From NCBI GenBank assembly GCA_002269645.1, contig NIVC01000107.1, forward strand, positions 327,867-391,866: a stretch of DNA of 64,000 nucleotides, written 5' to 3'. The translations under genes were made by a program, and so were the position numbers. Below the pieces are notes generated by a model. That model was given only the letters and a program-made list of their open reading frames with translations, did not search any database and was not told the DNA's origin. This stretch comes from Macrostomum lignano. Its lineage: Eukaryota. Of this stretch, positions 12,787-55,208 are shown piece by piece (position 1 is the stretch's first letter; the number at the start of each line of letters is the position of its first letter).

Positions 12787-14131
12787 CGAGGTGTATTCAA
12801 AAAGTTCTTTTCGGTGCCCTACAAAACTGAACACAAAACAACTGGAACTATGAAAACACTGTTAGATTGCTTAACATGATTCGGTCACTCAACATATTCA
12901 CCGCCAATGTCTTTGCACTTCTGCCAGCGATTTACCAGGCCTCTGATTCCGGAACTCACACCACTCGCGTCCGTTTGGCGAACAGCTTGATTGCATGCAG
13001 CCTCAATGTGCTCGACGCTGTCGAATCGAATGCCCCGAAGGTGCTTCTTCACAGATGGAAATAAGAAGAAGTCGCACGGCGACAAATCAGGCGAATAGGC
13101 TGGATGTTGGAGCACTTCCCATCCCCATTTGCTCAGGAGTTCCACGACGTTGTGCTTGCGATGTGCTGGCGCATTGTCGTGCAGCAGGATCACGCCAGAT
13201 TCCAGCAGATCAGGGCGCTTCTTTCGTATTGCTGGGCGCAGCTTCTCCTGCAGAATCCACTTGTAGTAGTCCCCATTGACGGTGGTTCCTTGTGGGACTG
13301 CCCAGTTCAGCAGGATTCCTTGGGAATCAAAAAACATGACGTGCATGATCTTCATCGCGCCCTGCTTCCTGATGGCCTTCTGAGGTCTTGGAGAATGTGC
13401 TGGAAGCCATTCGGCAGACTGGGCCTTTGTCTCAGGATCCCAGCTGTAAACCCACGTCTCGTCTCCAGCTACAATTCTTGATAGAAAATCCTCCCCTTCT
13501 CGATGGAACCGACGCAGGTGGCTGCTTGAAGCCACAGTTCGCTGCATCTTTTGCTCACCTGTCAGCAGGTGTGGCACCCACTTGCAAAACTTTTTCTGCA
13601 GGTGAAGACGCTCCGTCAGAATGGTGTGGACGCTTCCTACTGACACACCAACGTCTTCTGCCAACTCTTCGCAAGTCCGTCGCCGATCATCATCCAGGAG
13701 CTCTTGCACTTTCTTCACAACAGTCTCGTTGGTTGCAGTCATCGGCCTTCCAGAGCGATCATTGTCCTCAACGCTCTCTCTTCCCTCAGCGAACAGCCGG
13801 TACCATTTTCGAACTGTCTGCTCAGTTGGTGCACATTTGCCAAGCACTTGCTGAAGCTCCCTAAACATATCCGGTGGCTTTTTTCCTTGCAGAAACTGAA
13901 ACTTCATCAAGCTTCGAACGTCTTGCTTTGAAAATGATTCAGCCATGGCCAAGAAATTGAGTGGTAGCTGATAGAAATGTTCGCTGCTCTAACATAGTTG
14001 CAAACTGAGACTTAAAACCCTAGGAACGTTTAGGCCATAGACATAACTTGGTGAAATCGCTAAAATTCTGTTTACAAGGCTTTTTAAAAATAAATGCCAA
14101 AGGACCGAAAAGAACTTTTTGAATACACCTC
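12787..14131 (-). mobile_element. Mariner (Tc1/mariner, DD34D) DNA transposon, near full length
   Basis: 28-bp TIRs gaggtgtattcaaaaagttcttttcggt at 12788-12815 and 14104-14131. TA at 12785-12786. The right end is followed by a small duplication (gaatacacct) instead of a clean TA. Confidence 0.92.
12885..13952 (-). CDS. Mariner transposase, 355 aa, uninterrupted
   Basis: HTH region, WVPHLL, GDETW, HDNAPAH and YSPDLSPCDF motifs (D,D34D triad). Confidence 0.95.
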   Translation of the reverse strand: MAMAESFSKQDVRSLMKFQFLQGKKPPDMFRELQQVLGKCAPTEQTVRKWYRLFAEGRESVEDNDRSGRPMTATNETVVKKVQELLDDDRRRTCEELAEDVGVSVGSVHTILTERLHLQKKFCKWVPHLLTGEQKMQRTVASSSHLRRFHREGEDFLSRIVAGDETWVYSWDPETKAQSAEWLPAHSPRPQKAIRKQGAMKIMHVMFFDSQGILLNWAVPQGTTVNGDYYKWILQEKLRPAIRKKRPDLLESGVILLHDNAPAHRKHNVVELLSKWGWEVLQHPAYSPDLSPCDFFLFPSVKKHLRGIRFDSVEHIEAACNQAVRQTDASGVSSGIRGLVNRWQKCKDIGGEYVE

Positions 14132-31126: not shown

Positions 31127-33159
31127 CTGTTTTAGTATTCAGCCTTTTTACTTTGGCATCTCTGATCAAAATCCCGAGTCCACCGCAATCCCAAGATAAA
31201 AGAATAAAGAGACAGCGCCAAGAGGAACTGAAGGAGGCAGCCAAGAGATCCAGAAAATTACTGGTCTTGCCCTGGCAATTTTCATTCATTTTGATATGAA
31301 TTAAGTTGATATGAGCTGTCGGTTGCACATCTGCCTATTGGTGTAGGTGTAATCAATTGTTATTATTACGCACAGAGCATTGAGATTACAGATAGAAACA
31401 GCCCGAGGACAGAGTCCAATAAATTTACGCTCGTACACAGATCGAGCGTAACAGTTATATCGATGAATTTTCGATGCATTGATATAAGCAAGCCGAAACT
31501 CCAAAGTCGGATTATATATGAGTGCCAAAATTTTGACTGAGGCACGAGGCTGTGGCAGTGTCAAAGACCGAAAAAATGAGGCAGCTTTAGACAGAATTTT
31601 AACAGGCTCATTAAGGATAGGTAGCCAAAAAGTACAGCACTCCTTTCAATTTCTGAAGCAGCAAATTGTCATTGCATGGGCCAGTAGCTAGGTTTATTTG
31701 CGTTTTCTGTCTCAACTAATGTAATGGAAATTTAATCCATAGGGTCGAACGCGACGAGACGACATTTGTTTTTCGCTTGGTCTTCGGTTTTTGATTTAAG
31801 AATTTTTCTATGAATGTCACGTCGTAGGGTATGGTAGGCTGTAGCTAGCTAGGCTTGCAAAAAGCAAATCCAATGAAAGCTAGAACTAGTAGCTGTCGGC
31901 TGGCCGGTTCCAGTTCAGTTGCTGCGTTGCATTTATCATTCATGAGAGGACGTGTATGCGACCCGTGTTCCAACTCCAACACAGGCTCTTCAAGATGCCT
32001 GAGCTAAGTAACCCTAACCCTAACTAAAGTTATGTTATGATAGATGATAAGGCCTATCAAGTTTTTTATTTTGCATTTGCTTTTTCGCTCTTTCGCTTGA
32101 AAGCTGCGAGTGGTATAATAAAATTTATACCTACCTAGACTAGAGAATTCTTTGTATTGTAGACATAGGCCTACCTTAAAAATAGCCTAACCTAAGTAGA
32201 TTTTTAACTTTTTTGATAGGGGCCTAATGATAATTTTGAATTTTATAATGTAATAAGTGCTTTAAAATTCAAGTTTCATTGTTTTATTTACTAAATTGAA
32301 CCAAAATATTCATTCAATAGGCTAGGGCTCATCCCTATGTATGTATAGGCCTATATATAGGGCCTAGGCCTATGTATAGTTTTAATACTATGTGAATTAG
32401 GGCTAGGCTAATTTGGGCCTTCTATCCAACTAGACCACAAATCAATATTGTAATTTTTGGAAAATTGGCTAATTGCTTATTTTGTAACTTTTTTATATTA
32501 ATTTTATAATTTTATTTTGGCAATTCTTATTTTTTCCATGTTTAATTCTTTAAAGTTTAATAATTTTTAATTCAATTAAGTACAAAATTATATAGGCTAT
32601 AAAAATTTGAGAGAAACAAAGGAAAGCTTCTATAACTGGTCAATGAATATAAAAAAAGAAAATAAGCTATAAATAGTTTAAAGCCAGAGAAAAAAATTTA
32701 AATTGTACATAATGCAAAACTATATTGCAAGAAAGCTCCAAATATAAACTATGTCCACTTTTTCATTAAAGGTATGCACTTTTACATGCACCTGTGATTG
32801 TGTGTGTATGTGTGTAATAGTGATAGCCCATAATTCATGGGTTTTGTACTTTGAGGCAGTGTGGTCAAATGAATACAATGCGAGAAGTGATTGCAGAGAA
32901 GAAAAAGTCACAAAGGCTTGGAAGGCCAGTGCGCACTTATATATTTTACTTAAACAAACTACTAACCAGCATGATTCAGCAAACACCAAACTCTCCACCC
33001 GGCCTAGGCTGGTCTAGGCAGACAGAAAAACCCCCTAGCCAATCAGAACGCAAGAACACTAACTAGCATACAAGCTGTATACACAACAATGGGGTCTCAA
33101 TTGTGACAGCCCAGGCATCCAAATCTTGCATTTCTTCCACCCACTGCATTTCTCTCCAG

Positions 33160-36100
33160 TCAACGCCAAGAAGTCAGGCTGCTCAGCAGCCGGAAGGCGC
33201 CCCAGGCCAGCTGCAGCAGCTGTCCTATCCCTACCTCAATCTGTTCAAGGAGCTGGGCGTTGGCCAATGGAACAGGTCAGAGTGCCATGGCGGGGTGGCC
33301 TCCTACATGGACCAGACTGTCAAGTCAACTGCCTTCAGCATCCAGGGCGCGGTGTCCGCCTCCAACTACATCCAGCTGCCCAGGCCTGCTGGCCGCGGCC
33401 TGCAGCTGCAGTGCCGCTACCTGTACGTGCAGTTCCGGCCCAGCCCCGGCCGCCACTTCGTGCTGCACGTGGACCTGGCAGCGGCCGGCACCACCGCCCC
33501 GGTGCGGCTCAGCGTCAGCAGCCTCTACAAGCGGCCTGCCGGCGGCGCCGCTGCCATCAAGCTGCCGTTCGTCTTCGACGCCGACGGCCGAGGCCGCCTG
33601 CTGGCCGCGCCGCCGGACGAGTCCGAGGCGCCGGCGGCCGGGGCGCCCTGCCCGGAGGCGGCCCGCTGGACTCTGCTGCGTCTCGACCTGGACTGGGCGC
33701 TGCGGGTGTTCGCCGGGGTTCGCCTCGGCTGCCTGCGCGGCCTTCGGCTCTGCGCCTGCATGAGCGCTCGCGCCGTCTTTGCCGCCTCCAGGCGCTACCA
33801 GCCGAACGCATCGCCCGTCTCCGAGGAGGCGCTGCCCCGCGCCATGGCCTTCTTCCTGGGCCGCGGCGAGCGCTTTGAAGATCGCTACGATTTTGTGCAG
33901 CTACCCGAGCCCACAGTCGAAGCTCGCGAGGCCGCGCCTCCTGTCGGGCCGGCTGAGCGAAGACCCTCGCCGCCGCCTGCGCCGCTGACGCCGCCGCCGC
34001 CTCAACAGCCGCAGTCGTCCTTCGTCAGGCCGGCTGCTTCTGTGCCGGCGTCAGCAGCGGCGGAGCTGCGCCTGTCGCGGGTGCTGGGCTGCACACAGCC
34101 GCACAGCGCCTGCTGGACCCAGGAGGAGCTGGTCTTCCCCTGCCACGCCCTGGTGGTGGCCCAGTGCCTGGCCACCGGCCGCCAACGCTTCTTCACCGGC
34201 CACACGGACTCCGTTGGCTGCGTGGCCGTGGACTCCGCCTGCGGCCGGATGGCCAGCGGCCAGCGCGGCCTGCTCCGCCTGTGGGACTTCGCCGGCCAGC
34301 GCTGCCTGGCCCACTGTCCGGCCTTTCAGCTGGGCGCCGGCCTTCTGGCCTTCTCGCCCGGCGGCCTTCGGTTGGCCGGCACCGGCCGGGACGCTCACGG
34401 ACGCTTTGTGGTCACCGTCTGGCAGGTGAGCCGGGGCTGGCGTGCTGGGATTTGAATCAAGATAGGATGGGATTTGAGTCATGATTGGATGGGATTTGGG
34501 CCTGGGATGTGGAATCTGGTGGATAATTTTCCCCACATCTGCGACCCCCAGACGGACGGGCCGGTCGTCCGGCTGCTCGCCAAGGCCTGCAGCGACCAGG
34601 CCCCCGTTGCCCTGCACTTCCTGGACGAGGCGCGCGTAGTCACCTGCGGCCGCGGCGCCGTCCGCTTCTGGCGTGTCAAAGGCGGCGGCGGCGCCGCCGG
34701 AACCTCGGCGCTGCTCCGCTCGGCGCCGGCCGCCCTGGGCGAGTACGCGGCGCTGGACTTCACCGCCGTCTGCCCGCTGCCCGGGCCTGCCGACGCTGAC
34801 CCGCTGGTGCTGGCTTGCGCCCGGTCCGGCCACGTGCTCGAGCTCGGCGCCTCCGACCTGGCCGTCCGGCGCGCCCGCCGCCTGCTGCCGTCGGACCGGA
34901 CAGCCTGGCGTGGCCGAGCTCGGCCGGCCGGCATCGAGGTGTCCGCGGTGGCGGCCAACGAGTCCTTCTGCGTGACGGGCTCGGCCGATGGCTTCCTGCG
35001 CGTCTGGCCGCTCGACTTCTCGCAGGTGGGTCTTCGACTCGAGGTCCCTCACTTGAAGCTCGTTTTATCTCTGTGTTTGACCCTGGGACTAATTTGTGCG
35101 GGCTGATTTGGAAATGAACTGGTGCACCGCCTCTTGCAGGGAAGTCTAGTTATAATGTATTGAAATTTCCTCTTATCTTGAAATTGACCAAAAATTACAC
35201 CTGACTGAATTACACTTGACTGTAGCTGACCAAATCATACCTGACCAAATTACACCTGACCAAATTACACCTGACCAAATTACACCTGACCAAATTACAC
35301 CTGACCAAATTACACCTGACCAATTTACACCTGACCAAATTACACCTGACCAAATAGCACCTGACCAAATTACACATGACCAAATTACACCTGACCAAAT
35401 TACACCTGACCAAATTACACCTGACCAAATTACACCTGACCAAATTACACCTGACCAAATTACACCTGACTGAATTACACTTGACTGTAGCTGACCAAAT
35501 TACACCTGACCAAATTACACCTGACCAAATTACACCTGACCAAATTACACCTGACCAAATTACACCTGACCAAATTACACCTGACCAAATTACACCTGAC
35601 CAAATTACACCTGACCAAAAAGCACCTGACCAATTTACACCTGACCAATTTACACCTGACCAATTTACACCTGACCAAATTATACCTGACCAAATTACAC
35701 CTGACCAAATAGCACCTGACCGAATTACACCTGACTGATATTACCCCCCAAACCTTACCTTATAAAATTCCCCGCTCGCCCAGGTGCTCCTCGAGGCCGA
35801 GCACGAGAGCCCGGTGGTGACCGCCGCTCTCAGTCGGGACGGCGCCAGCGCCCTGGCCGCCACCGCCGCCGGCTGCCTCGGAGTCCTGGACGTTGCCCGC
35901 CGCGCCTACCGGACACTCGTCCGCTCGCCCGGCCCCGGCCCGGTTGCCTCCGCCCATCTCGGCCGGGACACCCTGGCCACGGTGTCCGCCGGCGACAAGT
36001 CGCTCCGCCTGTGGAGCTCCGACCGCCTCGACCAGTGCCAGAGCTTCGGCCTCGCTGAGCCGCCCTGCCGCGTCGCTGTTCACCCCCGCGACGGCCTCGC

Positions 36101-39100
36101 CGCTTGCGGCTTCCGCTCCGGCCACGTCCGCTTGTTCGACCTGGCCGCCGCTTCCATGCTGGGTGAGCGGCGCAGCCATAGCGGCGCCGTCAGCGGGCTC
36201 GCCTTCTCCGCCTGCGGCCTCCGCCTGTTCTCCTGCGGCTCCGACGGCGGCCTGTCGGTTCACGACGCCTCGGCGGCCTGCGCGCTGCTCCGCTCCGTGC
36301 CCGACGTTGTCGCCAGGGTCGGCGCCGGCGGCTCCGAGGACCGTCCGAGCCCGCTGGCCGTGGACTCGGCCGACCCCGGCGGCTCCCTCATTGCCTACAT
36401 CGGGCCGACCGGCGCCGCGGTTGTCGTGGCCGAAGGCGCCACCCTCGCTGAGCTGATCCGCGTAGACGTCACCATGGTCGCCGGGGCGGGCGTGGCGGAC
36501 GCAGCCCGCGCCCTGCAGTTCGGCGCCGGGCACCTCCTGGTGGCCACGGAGGGCGGCCGCCTACTTCGATTGGAGCGCCGTTCCGGCCGCCTGGCCTCCC
36601 AGCTGTCCGACCTCGGCCGCTGCGACTGCCTCTGCCTGAGCCCGGACGGCCGTTACTGCGTGGCCGGGGTTGGCCGGCAGCTGAAGCTGTTCCAGAACTG
36701 CTCGACCGGACAGGTGCAGTTCTCCAGCTTCCTGGGCCACAGCGGCCGAATCTGCGCGCTCGCCTTTAGCGCCGACGGCGCCAGACTGATGTCCGTTGGG
36801 GAGGCGGTCCTCGTCTGGGACTTCATGGCCCCGCCGGCATCTGAGAAGCCTGCCGAGAACCTCAGGACTGAGAACGGCGCCAAGGTTTGTGGACAGTGAA
36901 ACCAGCCCCACCTGACTCCCAATGTACATCAGCCTCCCCACCTCACTCCCAATGTACATCAGCCTCCCCACCTCACTCTCAATGTACATCAGCCTCCCCA
37001 TCAACTCTTTGAGAAGTTTTCCATTTAATCCTTGTAGAAGCCTCAACCAACACCCGTCACGCCGGCCGCTCCGCAGTCGCGACACCGAGTGGAGGCGCCG
37101 GTGCGCGACCCCGGCCCGGGCCCGGCCACCGGGACGGCGAACCCGGAGCTCGCCGATGCCGTGCCGCTTGCGAACGACGGCAGCAGCTCCAGCTCCAGTG
37201 TGTCCGACTGCGAAGTCACGGAGCTCGCCGCGCCGGCCTCCAGCGCCCCGCCTGCCGAGCCGACGGTGTCGCTGCCGGTGCCGCCGCTGGCGCTGTTGCC
37301 CGACGAGCCGGCGGCGGGAGACGACGGCGGCGCTCCGCACGAGCATCCGGCGCCTTCATCTGCGCGCCACTTTCGGTCCGGCGCCGAGTCGTTGCGACAG
37401 CCGCCTGCCGACCAGCGGCGCTACCTGGCGCGGCCCGGCGAGGAGGCGCTGAGGCTGCGCGCCGGACTCGGTGCCGGCTCGGGCGTCGGCGCCATCGCCT
37501 GGCTGGAGGGCCGCGGCCGTCTGGTGTACGCCGTCGGCTGCCAGCTGCTGTCCGAGGACCTCGAGACCGGCCTGCAGGCGCGGCTCTGCCAGCTGCCCGG
37601 CCCGGCCACCGCGGCCGCCGCCAGCTCCGACAGCCGCCTGGCCGCCTTTTGCTGCCTCGGCGGCGGTCTGCGCATTTTCGACGCCGAGGCTGCCGACGCT
37701 GCGAACGCCGAGGCGCCGGAGGGAGTGTCGATGGCGCTGATCTGCCGCCCGCTGTCCGGCGGCCCGGCCACCTGCGCGCAGTTCAGCAGAGACGATCGCT
37801 ACCTGCTGACCGTGGGCAACCACGCCGATCCCCTGCTGCAGGTCTGGCTGGGTCCCGACTGGCAGGCCGTGGCCAGCCACCGGGCGGCCTACCCCGTCAA
37901 CGACGTCTGCTGGCGCGCCGCCGACCTCGCCAGTTTCGTCAGCGTCGGCACCGCGGCCGCCCTCTCCGTCTGGTCGGTGGTTAGCGGGCCGGACGGATCG
38001 CAGCGGCTGCAGCTGGAGGAGCTGCCCGCGCCGGACGAGGCCATCGGACGGCGGCCCGGACTGCGGGCGTCGGCTGCCTCAGCCGAGGAGCTGTCGGCTT
38101 GCACCGTCGACTCTGACGACGCCGCGTTTGTGGCCGGTGGCCGCGGCCGGGTCTCCGTGTGGTCGCTGGGCGAGCGCCGCTGCGTCATGCACTGGGAGGC
38201 CGAGGCCAACGAGGTGTGTCGGCTGGCCCTGCGGCCCGGCGGCCTCCTCCTGTGCGGAGCCGCTGACGGCGCCGTCAAGGCGTGGGACGTGCGCGACATC
38301 CTTGGCCTGGGCGGCGGCGGCTGGTCGGGCGGCCGCGTCCGGCTGGTCAGCTCCGCCCGACTGGATGGCGCCGTGCTGGCGCTGCTGCCGGACAGCCAGG
38401 CCGAGCTGGCGCTGGCCGCCACCGCTGCTTCCGTGTGGTGCCTCCGAGTTGCCGAGGGCGCCGCCACCCGCCTGATCGCCGGCCACGCCGCCCGCGTCGC
38501 CGCCGCGGCGCCGTTGCCCGGCCTCGGCGTCCTGGCCACCGGCGACGCGTCGGGCGCTGTCCGAATCTTCGACTCGGCCGGACGGCAGCTCCTGTGCCAG
38601 CTGCAGCCCGGCCGCCTCTCGGCCGCCTGCCTCTGCCTGGCCGCGGACGCCCTCTACTTGGCGGCCGGCTACGGGGACGGCCACGTCCGGGCCTTCACGG
38701 CCGGCGCCGACCTCGGCCAGACTTTGAAGGCCCGCCCGCACGCGGCCGGCGTGTCCTCGCTGGCTTTGGACCCCGGCCACCGTTTCCTGGTCAGCGGCTG
38801 CTCCGACGGCCTGCTGGCGCTGACGGGTCTCGACACCGGCCTCGTGCTGCGCGTCCTCCGCGACCACCGCGGCTCCGGCGTCGCCTGCCTGGACATCCAG
38901 CCGGACTCCGGCGGCTGCCACTTCCTGGCCTCCGCGGCCGACCGCCGCCTCAGCCTCTGGGCCTGCGCCGACTCCGCCGACTCCGTCGACCTCCGCCTGT
39001 GGCTGGCCTTCCCCCTGCCGGCCTTCGCCCCAGGCAGCGGCCGCCCGCTGTCTGACGATCCGACGGCCGCCATGGAGCTGCCGCCGGCGCTGGCCCGCTT

Positions 39101-39434
39101 CTGCCCGGCCGACGCCGACCTGCTGCTGCTGACCGGCTGCGCCCAGCAACCGGCCGTGGACCTCTACAGCCTCGCCCAGCGCCGAGTCGTCCGCTCCGTG
39201 TCGCTGCCCCGCTGGCCGCACTGCCTGGACGCGTCTCCGTCCGGCCGCCTGCTGCTGCTGGGGTCGCTCGGCCGCCTTGTCACCCTGCTGGACCTCGGCA
39301 GCGGCTGCTTCCAGGACTTCGTTGGACACGCGGAGGGCCTGTCCTGTGTCCGGTTCGGCGAAGATGGACGGTCCTGCTGGACTGCGGCAGGGAGAGACGT
39401 CCTGGGCTGGGATGTGCTGATCAGGGACTGCTGA
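33160..39434 (+). CDS. WDR90: WD repeat-containing protein 90 (CFA20/DUF667 domain plus multiple WD40 propellers)
   Basis: Exons 33160-34425, 34552-35025, 35784-36884 and 37038-39434 (all phase 0, about 1745 codons). N-terminal YPYLNLFK...SASNYIQLP...YLYVQFRP.PGRHFVLHVD matches the WDR90 CFA20 domain. GH...W[D] WD repeats and a C-terminal QDFVGH motif are present. The start exon was not located. Confidence 0.92.
35195..35740. repeat. Intronic minisatellite, 15-bp unit (cacctgaccaaatta)
   Basis: WDR90 intron. Confidence 0.95.
36915..37005. repeat. Intronic 30-bp tandem repeat x3
   Basis: cccaatgtacatcagcctccccacctcact. Confidence 0.9.
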
Positions 39435-46002: not shown

Positions 46003-47117
46003 CGTACGCAGTTTTCAGATGCGCCGCTGAGCAGCAACAAAGGACGCGAACCTGAAAAGTTAATTCAGGCGGTCAGGGTGCATTAGATGGCGCGCTTCAG
46101 GGCGACAGAGTCCACCAGCGGTGCCGAGCGCACAGCAGGCAGTCCGCCTACATGAACCAACAAGTAGCTCTCGGCCCGGATCAATGACTAAGAAGGTCAC
46201 ACTACACAGCTGGCCCACATCATACAGCTGGATCTAATGGAGTTGCAAGAGGTCACTGTTGTGGCGTGAGTACTAAGTACAAGTATTGAGTACTTCAGTC
46301 GTACCGTATTTATGTTTCAACAGTATTGTATTCAACTCAAATCATTGCGTAACATATAGCCAATCTGCCAGGTGTATACACCCAACGTGCACGCTTCATT
46401 TACTAACAAATATAAAGCGGCGGAGTCAGTCGAGACTCCACAATTCTTATTTCTCAACTCTCGCTCGCACAAAAACCCACGCGTTCAATACACAACAGTC
46501 ACTATCGTGGGTACGTCTCCATTCAGAGGATCCTGGGACCGGGTGAAGGTGTCTGGTCAAACCACGCCTTCGGCAGAACATGCACTACTTGTCGCTGTCC
46601 CCGCGCCTGTTGCGGCTCGACCTGCACCTGCTTGCCCTGCTGCATCCGGCTGTTCTGCGCGAACTCGGCCGCAGGTTCTCACCCAGAAGAAGCACGAGCG
46701 TTTAAATACCCGCGCTTTTGTCCGACCCAATACTACAGCAGACTGGCTGAAAAGTAGTCAGACAAAAAATGACAGCTACCAAATATCTCTCTAATGTAGT
46801 TCCTTATTAATCTGGCTGTTCTCCGTCCGGAGATCTCGGTTGTGGCCCCATCTGCTGTAATACTGAATGTACTAAAGTACAGCTCGTAGTCAATAAACTT
46901 GTAAATTGACCGCAACCAGAGCACAGGGAGAGATCCGACAAAACTGTCATGTAAAAAACCTTGCTAACACTTTGTCTCAAGTGAAGTAACAGGTGCGAGT
47001 AAGTAGCTGTAGCCACTTTACTCATAAAAAGTTTCTTAAGGCAAGGGCAGTCCGCGCTTAAAATCCATGCATTCAGTTTATGTTTTCCTATTCTCTGCGT
47101 TTAACTGTTACAAACGC

Positions 47118-47131: not shown

Positions 47132-47506
47132 CCAGTTCGCTAAGCATGCAGGGACTCGCTGCAAATGCGTACCAATGATCGGGTCAGCCCCTTCACCAGC
47201 AGACTTCTCGTTTTCTCTGTCCCGCATCTCTCTCCCTCTGAGCTCTGAAGGACCCGCAGATCCTGGATAAAAAACTCCCAATCACAATCCCAGCTATACA
47301 GTTGTTGTTGTCGACTAGCTGCCCCCCCCCCCAGTGAGCTAATCCATGATTGATAATCTCGGCGGCCTCCCAGTTGCCAATGCCAACGGAGTTGCTCCGG
47401 GAGGGGGTCGCATAAGGAGCGGCTCACGGGCTGGTGCGCGCGCCCGCAATCTGGGGCAGCTGAGAGGCAGGGAGAGACGGCACTGCGCACGGAACTCAGC
47501 TTGTCA

Positions 47507-49251
47507 ATGGAGGACAGCGCAAGCCGCGGCTCAGCTACGTTTCGCAAAGAATCCGGCCGCTCGTCCGCCGCCTCTTCCGTGCCCTCCTCGGCCAAGTCGG
47601 CTAAAAAGAAGCAGCAAAAGAAGCAGCAAAAGCAGCAGCAGAGGCGGTCGTCAGGCTCTTCTTCCTCCTCTGCATCGTCCGAGACCGGCGAGCAGCAGCT
47701 GAACGCGGAGCTGCGGAAGCAAATCGGCGCGGCGCAGGGGCAGTCAGCGGAGAAAATGCAGGCGGAGCGGCCGGCCGGAGCAACTGAAGAAGAGACAGAA
47801 GAAAGCGGAAAAGAAATTGAGCAGGCAGCAGCAGATGAAGGCAAGGAAGGCCAGAATGAGGCGTTAGTTGATGAGAGAGAAATCGATAAAGTGACGGTGG
47901 GTGAGGACGCACCTGATTCAGAAGCTGCTGTGGAAAAAGACTCGCCACCCAAAGAGAAGGAGTCGACGAAAGAGAGAGAAAATGTTGCAAGTCCACTTGC
48001 AGAGCAGGAAGGTGTGGCTGAGGCGGAGCACGCGGATGCAGATGCGCATGCGAATGCGGATGCCGATGCGGATGCGGATGCGAAGACGGATGCGGACGCG
48101 GATGTGGATGCGGATGCGAAGGCGAACAAGGATGCGGATGCGGATGCAGATGTGGATGCGGATGTGGATGCGAAAGCGAACGAGGATGTGAAGACGGATG
48201 CGGATGCGGATGCGGATGCAGATGCGGATGCGGATGCGGATGCGGATGCGAAGATGGATTCGGATGCGGATGCAGATGTGGATGCGGATGTGGATGCGAA
48301 AGCGAACGAGGATGTGAAGACGGATGCGGATGCGGATGCGAAGACGGATGCGGATGCGGATGCGGATGCGGATGCGGATGCGGATGCGGATGTGGATGCG
48401 GATGCAAAGGCGAATAAGGATGCCAAGGCAGACACAAACGTGGATGCAAATGCGGAGGCGGAAGTGAACGCAGGTCCAGATGTCAATGCAGAAGAGAATG
48501 CCGATGCGGAAGTGAATGATCGAAGTCAGTCGCTGCCCCCTGCCATTGAAAGACAGCTGAAGGAGGCCGGGGTACCCGCAGACCAGAGACGTCTGTACTT
48601 TCAGGCCTACACGCGGGTAGAGCGGGGCAGGGGTTACGTGACCCGAGACGACATGTACACGGCGCTCCAGCTGCTGGGGCAGTGCCCGCAGAGCCAGGAG
48701 GAGGTGAGTATCAGAACTAGGGACATTTAGAACTTAATATAAATAAAATTTCTCAAACTTAGAAAAGCATCCTAAAATGGATCATCGGATATTCTCAGGT
48801 GCTCCAGCAGCTCAGCCAGCACGGCGAGCCAGCCGACGGGCGCCTGTCGTTGACCGAGTTCGCCTCGTTCTGCGCCGCCATCTGCCGCAGCCGGGAGGCC
48901 GTCAGAGCAGAGCTGGAGGCCAGCTTCCGCGTCTTCGACACGGACGGCAGCGGCTACCTGGACCGCCAGGAGCTGCGCCGGGCGCTGTTCGGCGACGACG
49001 ACGGCGACGGCGGCGAGGACTTCGAGGAGCTGGCCAGACTGGCCGACACCAACGGTGACGGGAAAATCGACTGCGCCGGTAGGCGATCGTCCATCTCTGA
49101 GGGAATCCTCCTCCAGACGATCTGCTTGCCTCCCACATGTATTTGAGTCATGAGTCCCCCCGTCTGACCCACAGAGTTCTGCCGCCTGGTCACCATGGGC
49201 TTCGAGGAGATGCGGCAGCAGGCGGCGCAGCCTCAGCAGCCGAGGTCCTAA
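47507..49251 (+). CDS. Calmodulin-like EF-hand protein with long acidic (Asp-Ala)n N-terminal region
   Basis: Exons 47507-48703, 48799-49078 and 49175-49251. Canonical loops [12 protein letters not shown] and [12 protein letters not shown] plus two degenerate N-lobe hands. The DA repeat is encoded by gatgcg at about 48035-48460. Confidence 0.8.
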
Positions 49252-49634
49252 CAGAGAGAACTGTCATTTTTACACAGGCAGCACAAAGCATGTTTGATTC
49301 CTCACAGATCTCGGCATCACAGCTTAATTTTGCTTTCTTTATTGCTTTAAACAGCACCCAAATAAAAAGATTTCCTGGAGCAACACTTTTAATTTCGAGT
49401 TAATCACACACTAAAAGCAACAGAAAGTTACAACTTTTTCTGTATAAAATTGACTTATTTGGTGGCAGTTCAATTTAAACATTTTTAGGGAAGCAATTGA
49501 GTTTACAAGTAGAAAAGTAGAAAAACTTGTCGGTCAAACGAAGACATTTAGTGAAATTTGGCCTCTCGGAACAGGCAACCCTGCAGTGTCGAGGCTCCCA
49601 GTAGCTTAACTCAGTCTTCCTAAGTCATCCGAAC

Positions 49635-52600
49635 TCAGAGCTCCCCCTGGCGGGCCGCAGCCGCCGCGCCGCCCAGCACCTGCTCCCTCGGCAGGTCGGC
49701 ATTGCGCAGCAGGTGGTAGTAAAAGTTGATGGCCTTTTCGAACACCGTCACGCCGATGCGCTCGTCGACGCCGTGGTAGCGGTTGGCGTCCCGCATGTGG
49801 ATGTGGTTCGGGGTGAACCTGTACACGTTGCGCGTGAACTGCAGGTAGTGGTTGGTGTCAGTCTTGGCCACAAAGATGCCCGGTAGGACGCGACCGTCCG
49901 TGAACACCTGCTGAGCTGTGCCGGCCACCACCTGGAAGAGTTGCGGATGGACCAGTGACGGACTAAAGGAACCTTGCGAGCTCTTAGATTTTACCTTGAT
50001 GCAAGCAATCTACTCTACCTGAAAGGCGTAGCTGGATTCCTCGCAGTCGGCCACCGGGGAGGCTTCGATGCCGTCCAAGATCTCAATCTGGATCCGGGGA
50101 TCGGCGATGACCTGGCGGTCGTGGTCAACCACCTGCTGAATGGTCTGTGACGGGTGGATGCGATGGTTGACCACCGCCTGGGCGCTGCTGGCCAGCACGT
50201 TGTGCTTGATGCCCGCGTTGAACATGGTGACGGCCGTGGTCGTCCGGATCAGCGCATTGGTCGGTGGATTTCGGCTGAGTGCACTTGAAATTTGCACAGC
50301 GGATAGGCGTTAAAGTCACGTGACTTTTCATGCTTCCATTGGTCTATTAAAGTAGAATCATTACACTTGTCGAGCTTGACTTACTAGCTAACTAGAGGCT
50401 TGAACAGCCACAGATTGTTGAGCACTACTCTGGCCGCGATGTTGGCCTGAAGTTGGCATCGAACAGTTTTGCATTACAATTAGGAACTTTGGGCGATGTA
50501 GTAAATCAAGGCGGCTGCCGACCCGCAGCCAGAGGGCCGGCAAGCGCATTCCGCTGATCCTGAGCTCGCACACGCACGAGTACATGCAAGTGCGCAGGCA
50601 CTGTGCTTCGGGGGCTTACCCTAATGAGCCAGAATCAGGCTAATTTGCGTGCACGAGCTCAAAACTCGGAATCGAACCCCGGGTCACTCGCGCGTTGACC
50701 GCTGAGCTGCTGTGCTTCTGAAACTACTATTAGTAATATTCATAGCCTCCTATGACTCACCGGGAACGGCAGCTTCAGGTAAGTTGATAGGAGCTCCAGG
50801 ATCGCCTTCTCCGGTCCGTTGCCCAGCTGAGACGGCTGCTGACTGGCTTCGAGCCGCGCCACCGCCCTGGCCAGGACGCCGATGACGCTCTCGGCCGGCG
50901 GCATGGACGAGTGGCCGGGCGTCGAGTTGTAGCTCAGGCGCAGGTTCACGTAGCCCTTCTCGGACACGCCGATTCTGCAATGCATTTGCGGTTGGCAGTC
51001 GGATCCGAGTTTGTCCAGGAGTTGCAGACCGATTTCAAGGCGGTAGGCAACTGCGGCAACGCCAAAATGCGGCAACGCTCACATAATCGCAGGGGCGCTG
51101 AGGCCGGGCACGAAGCCGTCCAGCACTACCATGCCTTCGTCGGACACGAACTCGAGCTTCTGAACCTTCTCCACGGTGCGCAGGTGCTCGGCGATGCGAG
51201 CTGCGCCCTGAAAGCCGTGAATCTGCAGCGGCGGATGTTTTATTGCTGAGATTTTTCATAGCCTTAGAGAGGTCGGGGCGCAGATCCCCGCCCCCACCGG
51301 ACTCATGATTGCGTGCCTGCTAGAAGTAGAATTCATGACAATATAGCTTCTTGGAAATGTTTGAGGGCAAAACCAAAACATCAGGATGTCATTTCTAGCT
51401 CGTAAGTCTTGTTTTAATTGGGTTGGTCACAAAAGTTTATGCTCGAAGTTTCCAGGAATCGAAGTGCATCTATCGAATTTTTGTTAGCATTGCGTCTCCT
51501 GCTCACCTCCTCGTCGTGGCCAAACGCGATGTAAAACGTCCTCTTCGGCTTCCAGTCCTTGGCGAGCAGGTACTCCATCGCCTCCAGGATGCCCTGCGAG
51601 AATTGCAGCCAGCGAGAGTTGGTGAAAACCTTTCGGAGAAATGAGAGCAGCTGGAATGACTCACGAAAACTCCGACTTTGTCGTCAATGGTGCCGCGCGC
51701 GTAGATGTAGCCGTCCTCCACCACGGCGTCGAAATGCGGCTTGGTCCAGTTCTGACCGTCTGAGGAGAAACACAGGTTGCACACAAAATTCTGGACATTC
51801 TCGAGAAAATTACGGGAATTGGTCGAATACGCATTAAATTTTCTCAAGAATGGATTAGTCTGGAATTCCCCTCGTGAACCCTCACATCTCAACAATTCCC
51901 CCGATGAACCCTGGAGTCTCAACAATCCCCCCCCATGAACCCTGGAGTCTCAACAATCCCCCCATGAACCCTGCAGTCTCAGCAATTCCCCCCATGAACC
52001 CTGGAGTCTCAACAATCCCCCCATGAACCCTGCAGTCTCAGCAATTCCCCCCATGAACCCTGGAGTCTCAACAAGTCCCCCATGAACCCTGTAGTCTCAG
52101 CAATTCCCCCCATGAACCCTGGAGTCTCAACAATTCCCCCCATGAACCCTGGAGTCTCAGCAATTCCCCCATGAACCCTGGAGTCTCAGCAATTCCCCCC
52201 ATGAACTTGTAATCTCAGCAATTCCCCCGATGAACCCTGGAGTCTCAGCAATTTCCCCCATGAACCCTGGAGTCTCAACAATTCCCCCCATGAACCCTGG
52301 AGTCTCAGCAATTCCCCCCATGAACTTGTAATCTCAGCAATTCCCCCGATGAACCCTGGAGTCTCAGCAATTCCCCCATGAACCCTGGAGTCTCAGCAAT
52401 TCCCCCATAAACCCTGGAGTCTCAGCAATTCCCCCCATGAACCCTGGAGTCTCAGCAATTCCCCCCATGAACCCTGGAGTCTCAGCAATTCCCCCATGAA
52501 CCCTGGAGTCTCAGCAATTCCCCCCATGAACTTGTAATCTCAGCAATTCCCCCGATGAACCCTGGAGTCTCAGCAATTTCCCCCATGAACCCTGGAGTCT

Positions 52601-53885
52601 CAACAATTCCCCCATGAACCCTGGAGTCTCAGCAATTCCCCCGATGAACCCTGGAGTCTCAGCAATTCCCCCATGAACCCTGGAGTCTCAGCAATTCCCC
52701 CCATGAACATGGAATCTCAGCAATTGCCCCATGAACCCTGGAGTCTCAGCAATTCCCCATAAGGCTTGGCATCTCAGCAAGTGCATATCTGTATCTAAGA
52801 GTAAGAGCGGTCTCACCAGTCGGCACAACATCCAGGTGAGACATGAGCAGCGCTGGCAGCAGGCTGGAGTCCGAGCCCTGCACCTTGTACAGCAGGCTGT
52901 ACTGGTTGATCACAGTGAGCTTCACAGACGACTTGGCCCATAGTCAGGAAGGTGGCAGTTTGGTCGGAAAATTCCGGCGCACACAAGCCCTTTTTGGGCA
53001 CACAACGGCGCACAACGGCGCACAGCGGCGCGCCACAACAGCGCACAGCGGCGCACTGGCGCACAGCGGCGCACAACGGCGCACACCAGAGGACACCGGC
53101 GCATGGCGGCGCGGCGCGGCGGGCGCCGCGCCACATGCAGCGTTACCCTTGTGGCGATCCCATGTAACGATGTAAGTCGTTACTTGTTACAGTACACTAT
53201 TCACTGTTCTATCTAATGTAACACTGCATTCTACCAAAAAATAAAAAATAAAATAAAATATTTTCCTTTTCCTTTTTACCTTTGTTTTTGCCATTTGCTT
53301 ACTTTTTATGTTTGTTTTGTTTTAAAAATTAGAAATTAAATTAAAAATTTTTTAAATTTCTATTTTCGGTTTAACGATCTCAATTTCTCATAATATAATA
53401 TAGATAGCCCGTAACCGTCCCGTATATTGGCGCACAAAAATTGTTGCTATGTTGTAAAAAAAGGTCTTTTATTGTCGCAAGGCAGGTAGTGGCGGGCGCA
53501 CAACGGCGCACACGAGGGTTTTTGTGTCGGCGCACGGCGCACAATTTTGGGAGAGGCCAAAATTTGTTCCGGCGCACACTCTGCCACCTTCCTGACTATG
53601 GGACTTGGCCGAGTGCACCCGGGGGAAGCTGCTCCGGATGAAGCTGACCATCTCGGCCAGCTGCTGGGTGTCCTGCCTGCCGATGTCGTAGGACACCGTG
53701 CGGAACCGGAGGCCCCGCTGGAAGCGGGCCAGGCGCTCCTCAGTCAGCTGGATGAAGTCTTCATCAGACTTGGCGCAGGGCCGCAGTGTGAGGCGGATGC
53801 TGCGCGAGTTGAGCGAGTTGAGCAGCAGCAGGAAGCTGAGCAGCCCGGCCAAGCAGGCGATCGTGACGAGAGCGGTGCGGGCCAT
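49635..53885 (-). CDS. PM20D1: Peptidase M20 domain-containing protein 1 (N-fatty-acyl amino acid synthase/hydrolase); exon 1 interrupted by a MITE
   Basis: Exons 53885-53602 plus 52929-52817, 51759-51665, 51593-51507, 51222-51083, 50974-50761, 50446-50385, 50283-50019 and 49931-49635 (about 518 aa). Motifs YSLLYKVQGSD, SHLDVVP, YARGTIDDK, FGHDEE, DEG, GVSEKG, GHSSMPP, TDTNHY and HGVDERI. Confidence 0.93.
51890..52760. repeat. Intronic minisatellite, about 30-bp unit
   Basis: ccccatgaaccctggagtctcagcaattcc copies in a PM20D1 intron. Confidence 0.95.
52938..53601. mobile_element. MITE, 664 bp, perfect 21-bp TIR, 8-bp TSD, inserted in a PM20D1 coding exon
   Basis: TIR ccatagtcaggaaggtggcag at 52938-52958 and 53581-53601. 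TSD gacttggc at 52930-52937 and 53602-53609. Subterminal gcgcac(a/g) repeats and an AT-rich core. Confidence 0.95.
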
Positions 53886-54685
53886 GGAGAGCTTCCGAAT
53901 GCAGTTGACTCCTGGCTGCTCCGCGGCTTGCTGTATGAGCAGCGTGTGTAGCTGCTGCATGCTGGGCCGCCAACCCCTCCTCTACCCCACTATCAGCGGA
54001 CTGGGGGGTGGGGCAGACAGGGGTTGAAAGTTTCGCGAGAGTGCACCAAGGGGAGGGGGTGGGGGCGCAGAGGGACGGAATACCCGCTGAATGTACATTC
54101 ACTCCCTCGTATCATGCGGTTATGCACATAGAAAATGTACATGGCCATGGACACTACGATTCACGCTTGCTCTGTTCTGCTTTAGTTGTTAGCGCGGTTT
54201 TTAGATAACGAGAAGACATTAACAGAACTTTGATTTGAACCGTTATCAAATTTGAAAACTTTATAGATAGGGTGTGTTAAGTACCTTTATTAATTGAAGT
54301 ATATTGAGCCGCGCATTTTCATTAACTACTTCTGTATATTTATTACGGTGAAACATAGCTTATCTTATTTAAAAGTACTCAATAAACATGAAGTGATCGA
54401 AAATTCAAGAAATGATTGTGACAATGATGGCGCTCTGTACTGCAGACCCAGCTTTCTGGTTGTGAAATAGACAGCCAAAAACCAGCGGCCGAGAACGGCA
54501 GGCAGTTTGCGGACGTAGTCGGGCGTCAAATATATACAGCGAACTTTCATCCGGCAACTAAACTTTATAAACTTTGACGCACCACGCCTGTCACTGCGCT
54601 GTTGACCATTTTCTGGGCATTAAAATGTCAAGCTGCTGAGCCAATCTTGTACTGTAGAATGGATTTTGCGCTAGCGTCAGCCTGT

Positions 54686-55208
54686 TGGACCTTCGGGACC
54701 TTCGGGACCTTCGGGACCTTCGGGACCTTCGGGACCTTCGGGACCTTCGGGACCTTCGGGACCTTCGGGACCTTCGGGACCTTCGGGACCTTCGGGACCT
54801 TCGGACCTTCGACCTTCGGGACCTTCGGGACCTTCGGGACCTTCGGGACCTTCGGGACCTTCGGGACCTTCGGGACCTTCGGGACCTTCGGGACCTTCGG
54901 GACCTTCGGGACCTTCGGGACCTTCGGGACCTTCGGACCTTCGACCTTCGGGACCTTCGGGACCTTCGGACCTTCGGGACCTTCGGGACCTTCGGGACCT
55001 TCGGGACCTTCGGGACCTTCGGGACCTTCGGGACCTTCGGGACCTTCGGGACCTTCGGGACCTTCGGGACCTTCGGGACCTTCGGGACCTTCGGGACCTT
55101 CGGGACCTTCGGGACCTTCGGGACCTTCGGGACCTTCGGGACCTTCGGGACCTTCGGGACCTTCGGGACCTTCGGGACCTTCGGGACCTATGGGACCTTC
55201 GGGACCTC
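54686..55208. repeat. Minisatellite, 9-bp unit (gggaccttc)
   Basis: Explains the PEG/PKV/GTF pseudo-ORFs. Lies just 3' of the RING gene stop. Confidence 0.95.

Follow-up and report, generated by a model that had tools for sequence, protein, structure and literature searches.

Insertions of the maize transposons Ds, dSpm and Mu into coding exons are reportedly spliced out in part through cryptic sites in the element termini, a result that Wessler and colleagues are said to have demonstrated with cDNAs, and such imprecise splicing adds or removes a few codons. The introners of Micromonas, Aureococcus, dinoflagellates and other groups include families that are themselves transposons with terminal inverted repeats (TIRs) and target-site duplications (TSDs), in which the TSD supplies one of the two splice sites (PMC9860276, PMC12130899). 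Here we describe a 664-bp insert in exon 1 of a PM20D1-like gene of the flatworm Macrostomum lignano, located in the final 64 kb of contig NIVC01000107.1 (this whole stretch is referred to as the window, and its numbering is used throughout), and compare it with these systems and with MITEs (miniature inverted-repeat transposable elements). The insert is probably a recent MITE-like insertion that interrupts exon 1 in one copy of a PM20D1-like gene present as three homeologs and has left this copy null, and the intact protein deposited for the gene is then a mapping artifact.

The inbred M. lignano line DV1 carries three homeologous subgenomes (S, L1 and L2), as described for the assembly Mlig_3_7; these have diverged mainly by way of indels, with single-nucleotide polymorphisms (SNPs) at 2.2% across the genome and at 1.1% within coding sequence, while heterozygosity within a subgenome is negligible in this highly inbred line (PMC10733133). 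Window positions 49000-54500 (5.5 kb) are 100% identical to NIVC01000107.1 of that assembly (GCA_002269645.1), three GenBank proteins of which fall in one cluster: Mlig017718g1, g2 and g3. The copy in the window is g1; g2 lies on NIVC01001281.1 (locus L002) and g3 on NIVC01003041.1 (locus L003). The layout of g1, with exons placed by threading the deposited protein through the window, is as follows.

49635-53960, minus strand: PM20D1-like M20 peptidase gene Mlig017718g1 (PAA90600.1), with the conserved start ATG at 53885
53885-53602 and 52929-52817, minus strand: exon 1, split by the element
51759-51665, 51593-51507, 51222-51083 and 50974-50761, minus strand: exons 2-5
50446-50385, about 50283-50019 and about 49931-49635, minus strand: exons 6-8

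On the minus strand the flanks of the insert encode ...SFIRSSFPRVHSAK and SSVKLTVINQYSLLYKVQG..., and deleting the element with one copy of its TSD yields ...FPRVHSAKSSVKLTVINQYSLLY... in a single open exon. The remaining gene threads perfectly into 518 aa, or 543 aa when counted from an ATG farther upstream, and its seven introns are all canonical GT-AG; this bears out the initial annotation of this DNA in its statement that removing the element and one TSD restores a complete gene of about 518 aa with no other lesions. The repaired g1 protein shares 96% identity with entries from Macrostomum lignano; with annotated PM20D1 proteins of molluscs, annelids, lancelets and vertebrates/chordates it shares 45-55% identity across more than 90% of its length. 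Pfam recognizes Peptidase_M20 (PF01546, 6e-28) and M20_dimer (PF07687, 7e-11), and the M20 domain begins at residue 147 (543-aa numbering), downstream of the insertion.

The insert itself has the anatomy of a transposon, the parts of which are listed here.

52938-53601, no strand assigned: MITE-like non-autonomous TIR transposon, 664 bp, overall GC content 47%, subterminal regions GC-rich, core AT-rich
52938-52958, plus strand: left TIR (gene-strand 3' end), CCATAGTCAGGAAGGTGGCAG, a perfect 21-nt inverted repeat, 22 nt with one flanking base
53581-53601, minus strand: right TIR (gene-strand 5' end), the exact reverse complement of CCATAGTCAGGAAGGTGGCAG
53602-53609, no strand assigned: TSD, first copy on the gene strand, GACTTGGC on the plus strand
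52930-52937, no strand assigned: TSD, second copy on the gene strand, a direct repeat, GACTTGGC on the plus strand and GCCAAGTC on the gene strand
52976-53112, plus strand: subterminal array of a unit of about 10 bp, GGCGCACAAC, with seven GGCGCAC cores (Tandem Repeats Finder: 10.6 copies at 52997-53103)
53429-53579, plus strand: second subterminal cluster, six GGCGCAC motifs oriented as in the first

The 664-bp element, its perfect TIRs and its 8-bp TSD are thus in the sequence as initially annotated. The TIR 21-mer matches the window twice, against 0 matches expected from 100 dinucleotide-preserving shuffles, and the two TIRs pair, as expected, when the element is folded as single-stranded DNA. 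The direct repeat at the flanks is identical over 9 nt (GACTTGGCC), which can be read as a TSD of 8 bp with symmetric ends or of 9 bp with a one-base offset; it is taken here as 8 bp, the simpler reading. The longest stop-free stretch in the element is a low-complexity run of 90 codons, and the six-frame translation, searched as a 781-aa concatenate of stop-free stretches at E <= 0.01, found no protein relative in the searched collection. Neither the element nor the window as a whole gave an Rfam or tRNA match, so the element carries no RNA gene of a known kind, for example a spliced-leader RNA or the tRNA-derived head of a short interspersed element.

These properties place the insert close to MITEs, with which it shares its small size (664 bp), perfect TIRs, an 8- or 9-bp TSD with an empty site in relatives, a lack of transposase coding capacity, reiterated subterminal motifs and an AT-rich core. 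Unlike typical MITEs of hAT, P, Merlin or Mutator type, it has a CCATAG terminus that is not of hAT type and subterminal GGCGCAC motifs that are direct rather than inverted. All 13 of the 13 motifs have the same orientation at both element ends, such that beyond the 21-nt TIRs the subterminal regions are direct copies, an arrangement that would be unusual for transposase-binding repeats.

The other two genes also bear on the insertion. Both g2 and g3 carry the exact empty site, ...CACTCGGCCAAGTCGTCTGTG..., read TTCCCCCGGGTGCACTCGGCCAAGTCGTCTGTGAAGCTC, with a single GCCAAGTC and no element; the initial annotation had proposed to look for an empty site in haplotypes and paralogs. The alignments of L002 and L003 to the window break off exactly at 53602 and pick up again exactly at 52938, and the two parts share the 9-nt repeat. 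The two genes have the same seven introns as g1 and an undivided exon 1 of 397 nt, and orthologs (P0002) are likewise continuous through the insertion point. The insertion, the empty site in both other copies and the otherwise intact gene are direct observations, and the empty site in g2 and g3 is the state before insertion. One might suppose that a foreign fragment had been mis-joined into the contig during assembly, since chimeric scaffolds reportedly make up about a third of the length of Mlig_3_7 (PMC10733133). A perfect 8-bp duplication of the g2/g3 target next to perfect TIRs is, however, a signature of transposition and not of mis-assembly, and we regard an artifact of this kind as extremely improbable.

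How the three copies are related can be read from their divergence. Pairwise mismatch among the three loci is 1.6-2.3% over 18-20 kb, with many indels in addition, and the coding sequences of g1, g2 and g3 differ at 7-12 synonymous and 1-3 non-synonymous codons of 519. This agrees with the published three-subgenome structure of a neopolyploid and, because the three copies match the subgenome pattern, the intact counterparts are homeologs and not alleles, with two undamaged copies kept; the term knockout allele in the initial annotation therefore needs correcting. As in the published comparison of M. lignano homeologs (about 2% SNPs, mainly indels; PMC10733133), the 664-bp insertion is one indel among many; unlike neutral intergenic indels between homeologs, it falls within a coding exon, which makes it a candidate for gene loss. 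The only amino-acid change private to g1 is F18, in the signal-peptide-like N-terminus, and the repaired exon 1 of g1 departs from that of g2 and g3 at one nucleotide only, which is about 230 nt away from the insertion site (T at 53833 on the gene strand, G in g2 and g3). With this one private change, no other lesions and perfect TIRs and TSD, the insertion is likely to be recent, as had been proposed from the perfect ends and as the empty site in two homeologs now supports.

Other differences among the homeologs were seen in passing. A second indel found in g1 but not in g2 or g3 spans window positions 46252-46503: 240 bp (46258-46497) with a 6-bp direct repeat (AGTGAC) and inverted ends TGTTGTG/CACAACA, which could have arisen either when a small transposon inserted into g1 or through a microhomology deletion in g2 and g3. 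Most of intron 1 is a 30-bp minisatellite (51864-52758, about 30 copies, 89% matches), and since intron 1 measures 1057, 1302 and 821 nt in g1, g2 and g3, its copy number varies among the homeologs. In the leader of g1 a 1-nt deletion (53919-53960; GCGGAG, against GCGGGAG in g2 and g3) puts the upstream ATG at 53960 in frame, which accounts for the 25-residue N-terminal extension (MQQLHTLLIQ...) of deposited g1 relative to the 518-aa g2 and g3; this extension would add residues before the signal-peptide-like start.

The events proposed for g1 can now be stated. A non-autonomous cut-and-paste DNA transposon entered exon 1, probably recently, making an 8-bp TSD, and would be kept in the g1 transcript. 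Translation would then read through 43 codons of the element (SHSQEGGRVCAGT...PALRQ) to a TAA stop, giving a truncated product of about 95 native residues that would lose the M20 catalytic and dimerization domains. This stop lies upstream of seven introns and would be expected to trigger nonsense-mediated decay; the transcript may alternatively be polyadenylated early at the AATAAA that overlaps the stop. The null state of g1 is presumably tolerated because g2 and g3 are intact, and inactivation of g1 would be an early step in homeolog loss after whole-genome duplication. The features that belong to retention of the element are these.

53471-53469, minus strand: first in-frame stop (TAA) on retention, 43 codons into the element, overlapping its only gene-strand AATAAA at 53473-53468
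Gene strand: predicted element-retention strings GGCCAAGTCCCATAGTCAGG and CCTGACTATGGGCCAAGTCG

Set against this disrupted gene is the deposited protein PAA90600.1, which represents g1 as intact. It contains VHSAKSSVKL, from which it follows that the gene model must skip the element exactly, with a 672-nt gap, and an exact skip needs non-canonical boundaries. The annotation was built by merging de novo transcripts aligned with BLAT (minId 0.8, near-best 1%) and RNA-seq reads aligned with STAR allowing up to 1000 multimappings (PMC5730564), in an assembly to which 93% of genomic read pairs multimap (PMC10733133). Since exon 1 differs by only one nucleotide, transcripts of g2 or g3 would align perfectly to g1 with a gap of 672 nt, and the deposited intact protein is best explained by such cross-mapping and not as evidence of splicing. 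A search with the exon 1 fragment for transcript-derived pieces returned only distant homologs of similar length, a weak result because the known M. lignano proteins themselves were not returned. No M. lignano protein or contig of transcript origin turned up for this exon in the collections. Other gene-breaking insertions in Mlig_3_7 may be masked in the same way.

The junction in PAA90600.1 could instead come from real transcripts of g1 chromosomes that are free of the insertion, with the element either polymorphic or somatically excised in the sequenced worms. The deposited protein does join the g1-specific F18 to empty-site sequence, and the perfect TIRs suggest an element that can still be mobilized. 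That protein, however, is a conceptual translation of genomic exons, so its F18 is genomic and not part of a phased transcript, and in the highly inbred DV1 line heterozygosity inside each subgenome is negligible (PMC10733133). These considerations make a polymorphic or excised insertion very unlikely. Cut-and-paste excision, moreover, normally leaves a footprint, which counts against an excised element.

Exact removal of the element by splicing was considered too. Ten ways of placing the 672-nt gap yield an identical mRNA, and one more yields a synonymous TCC. The gap ends in these 11 cases, all of which keep the protein intact, run gg..tg, gc..gg, cc..gg, ca..gc, aa..cc, ag..ca, gt..aa, tc..ag, cc..gt, cc..tc and ca..cg; not one is GT-AG, GC-AG or AT-AC. 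Imperfect splicing was considered by scoring splice sites with plain consensus counts against the gene's own seven introns, which are too few for a species-specific model. The donor consensus was MAG/GTRAGT (slashes mark splice boundaries), scored as matches out of 9; of the donors in the gene's real introns, five read GTGAG, one reads GTAAG and one GTAGAG. The sites scored were the following.

Seven real g1 donors: 6-8/9, six of the seven beginning GTRAG
53618, minus strand: donor CGG/GTGCAC, 5/9, in frame, net -15 nt (-5 residues)
53609, minus strand: donor TCG/GCCAAG, 3/9, in frame, net -6 nt (-2 residues)
53579, minus strand: donor AGA/GTGTGC, 5/9, in frame, net +24 nt (+8 residues)
53604, minus strand: TSD donor CAA/GTCCCA, 4/9, giving a 673-nt intron and a frameshift
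53574-53621, minus strand: stretch of in-frame candidate donors, none above 5/9
53587 (6/9), 53302 (7/9) and 53279 (7/9): other donor-like sites, out of frame with the acceptor (53587) or beyond the stop (53302, 53279)
52932-52954, minus strand: acceptor-like caccttcctgactatgggccaag/TCG (ccttcctgactatgggccaag/TCG), ending at 52932 with its AG at 52933-52932, pyrimidine fraction 0.65, within the range of the real acceptors
Predicted cryptic-splice strings: CCCCCGGTCGTCTGTG, GCACTCGTCGTCTGTG and GGTGGCAGATCGTCTGTG
Predicted cryptic junctions: CCCCCGG/TCGTCTGTG, GCACTCG/TCGTCTGTG and GGTGGCAGA/TCGTCTGTG

The acceptor and the three in-frame donors quoted in the initial annotation are all present, and its remark that the GT of the TSD itself would shift the frame holds; the donor AGA/GTGTGC, which it had placed inside the TIR, lies 1-2 nt internal to the 21-nt TIR, within the element.

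These sites are what an imperfect cryptic splicing of the maize Ds/dSpm kind would use: the acceptor made of TIR and TSD would be joined to the donor at 53618, 53609 or 53579, and the resulting protein, shorter by 5 or 2 residues or longer by 8, could still work. The three donor/acceptor pairs are real, keep the frame and are free of stops, the acceptor ends in AAG as does one real g1 acceptor, and the segment that would change, VHSAKSS, belongs to an N-terminal region of low conservation (see P0002). The candidate donors, however, score 3-5/9 against 6-8/9 for real ones and none has a GTRAG core, while donor-like sites with an equal or higher score fall out of frame or past the stop. The scanned neighborhood also holds 100 in-frame, stop-free GT/GC..AG pairs, so finding such pairs is uninformative, and the altered junction occurs in 0 proteins of the M. 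lignano cluster. In principle the element could thus be spliced out productively, but this is not predicted from the sequence, and we consider it unlikely. The locus resembles the maize insertions in having a TIR element in a coding exon with splice-like ends, from which imprecise splicing would add or remove a few codons; it differs in that splicing there was reportedly demonstrated with cDNAs, whereas splicing of the 664-bp element would have to use weak donor candidates.

A stronger proposal is that the element belongs to an introner-like, multi-copy family that lands in exons, is spliced out and so creates new flatworm introns. In its favor, a coding exon is where this TIR/TSD element sits and an acceptor-like motif is supplied by its end, and some described introner families are transposons of just this build that take one splice site from the TSD (PMC9860276). 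It is nonetheless most improbable here, because canonical sites cannot remove the element and one TSD copy exactly, because only a single copy is seen in the 64-kb window and two 24-kb loci, and because a 664-bp insert whose AT-rich core holds a gene-strand stop and an AATAAA does not look streamlined for splicing. Introners are defined as many near-identical introns across genes whose removal leaves coding sequence intact, whereas this element is a single observed copy that no canonical splice removes with the coding sequence restored. A second copy was not seen in the window and the two homeologous loci of about 24 kb each (about 47 kb, or about 111 kb in total), and the TIR 21-mer had 0 matches in metagenome, prokaryote-genome and viral collections, which are not expected to contain flatworm DNA. 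We found no literature that links Macrostomum with introners or describes this element; only one paper contains both terms, and it is a study of fungi with a single mention of Macrostomum, and the words "flatworm" and "Platyhelminthes" are absent from the main text of the introner survey PMC9860276. It is likewise highly improbable that the g1 element is spliced through its TIR and TSD acceptor as a member of a flatworm family that repeatedly makes imperfect introns in exons. If that were true, this would be an animal introner caught at birth, its imprecise first stage sheltered by neopolyploid redundancy.

The initial annotation had left a MITE knockout and an introner-like intron as alternatives. 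The knockout is supported by the transposon ends, the empty site, the single private amino-acid change and the stop after 43 codons, while the intron finds no support, for want of an exact canonical removal, strong donors and a second copy within the roughly 111 kb covered. Some points do weigh against a recent insertion that has left g1 null and an intact protein that is a mapping artifact. Retention of the element in g1 mRNA is something we infer; the acceptor-like site at 52932 equals the gene's real acceptors, which makes some cryptic splicing conceivable; and the 672-nt skip is deduced from the deposited protein sequence and not from deposited exon coordinates.

The origin of the element within the known transposons was also considered. 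TSDs of 8-9 bp fit hAT, P, Merlin or Mutator-type elements, of which hAT elements have a CAG/TAG (YARNG)-type terminus and a target preference of nTnnnnAn. The terminus seen here, CCATAG..., is unlike the CAG/TAG signature of hAT, and the target GACTTGGC is off the hAT preference. A superfamily call from TIR and TSD was rejected as unsafe, given a TSD of 8 or 9 bp and a terminus with no verifiable signature match, and on these ends we regard the superfamily as not assignable. The window contains one transposase open reading frame (ORF), of 355 codons at 12888-13952 on the minus strand, with the Mos1/mariner domains HTH_48, Transposase_1 and DDE_3; it is of Tc1/mariner type and unrelated to the 664-bp element. 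As the only transposase ORF in the window it was considered as an autonomous partner and rejected, since the mariner superfamily makes TA duplications and the 8-bp TSD does not fit.

Elsewhere in the window, a 9-bp tandem repeat, GGACCTTCG, occupies 54687-55207 (about 59 copies, 97% matches) between the PM20D1-like gene and a RING-finger gene. ORFs of a WDR90/POC16-like gene, with a CFA20 domain and WDR90 beta-propellers, lie at 33103-39431 on the plus strand in a block of 70-76% GC, and the stretches adjoining this block have 30-45% GC, so that base composition is strikingly heterogeneous within 64 kb. In a long low-complexity stretch at 47140-48730 both strands are open: the plus strand, where the ORF 47501-48730 contains the stretch, is Asp/Ala-rich (DADADA...) and the minus strand is Ser/Ala-rich.

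Taken at the strength given above, what happened to g1 would be an ordinary event, the recent disruption of a redundant copy by a DNA transposon, and a concrete example of early homeolog loss in M. lignano. The perfect ends suggest a recently mobile cut-and-paste family in a flatworm that is used for transgenesis. In PAA90600.1 a disrupted gene would be shown as intact, and annotation based on multi-mapping can in this way hide gene-breaking insertions in polyploids.

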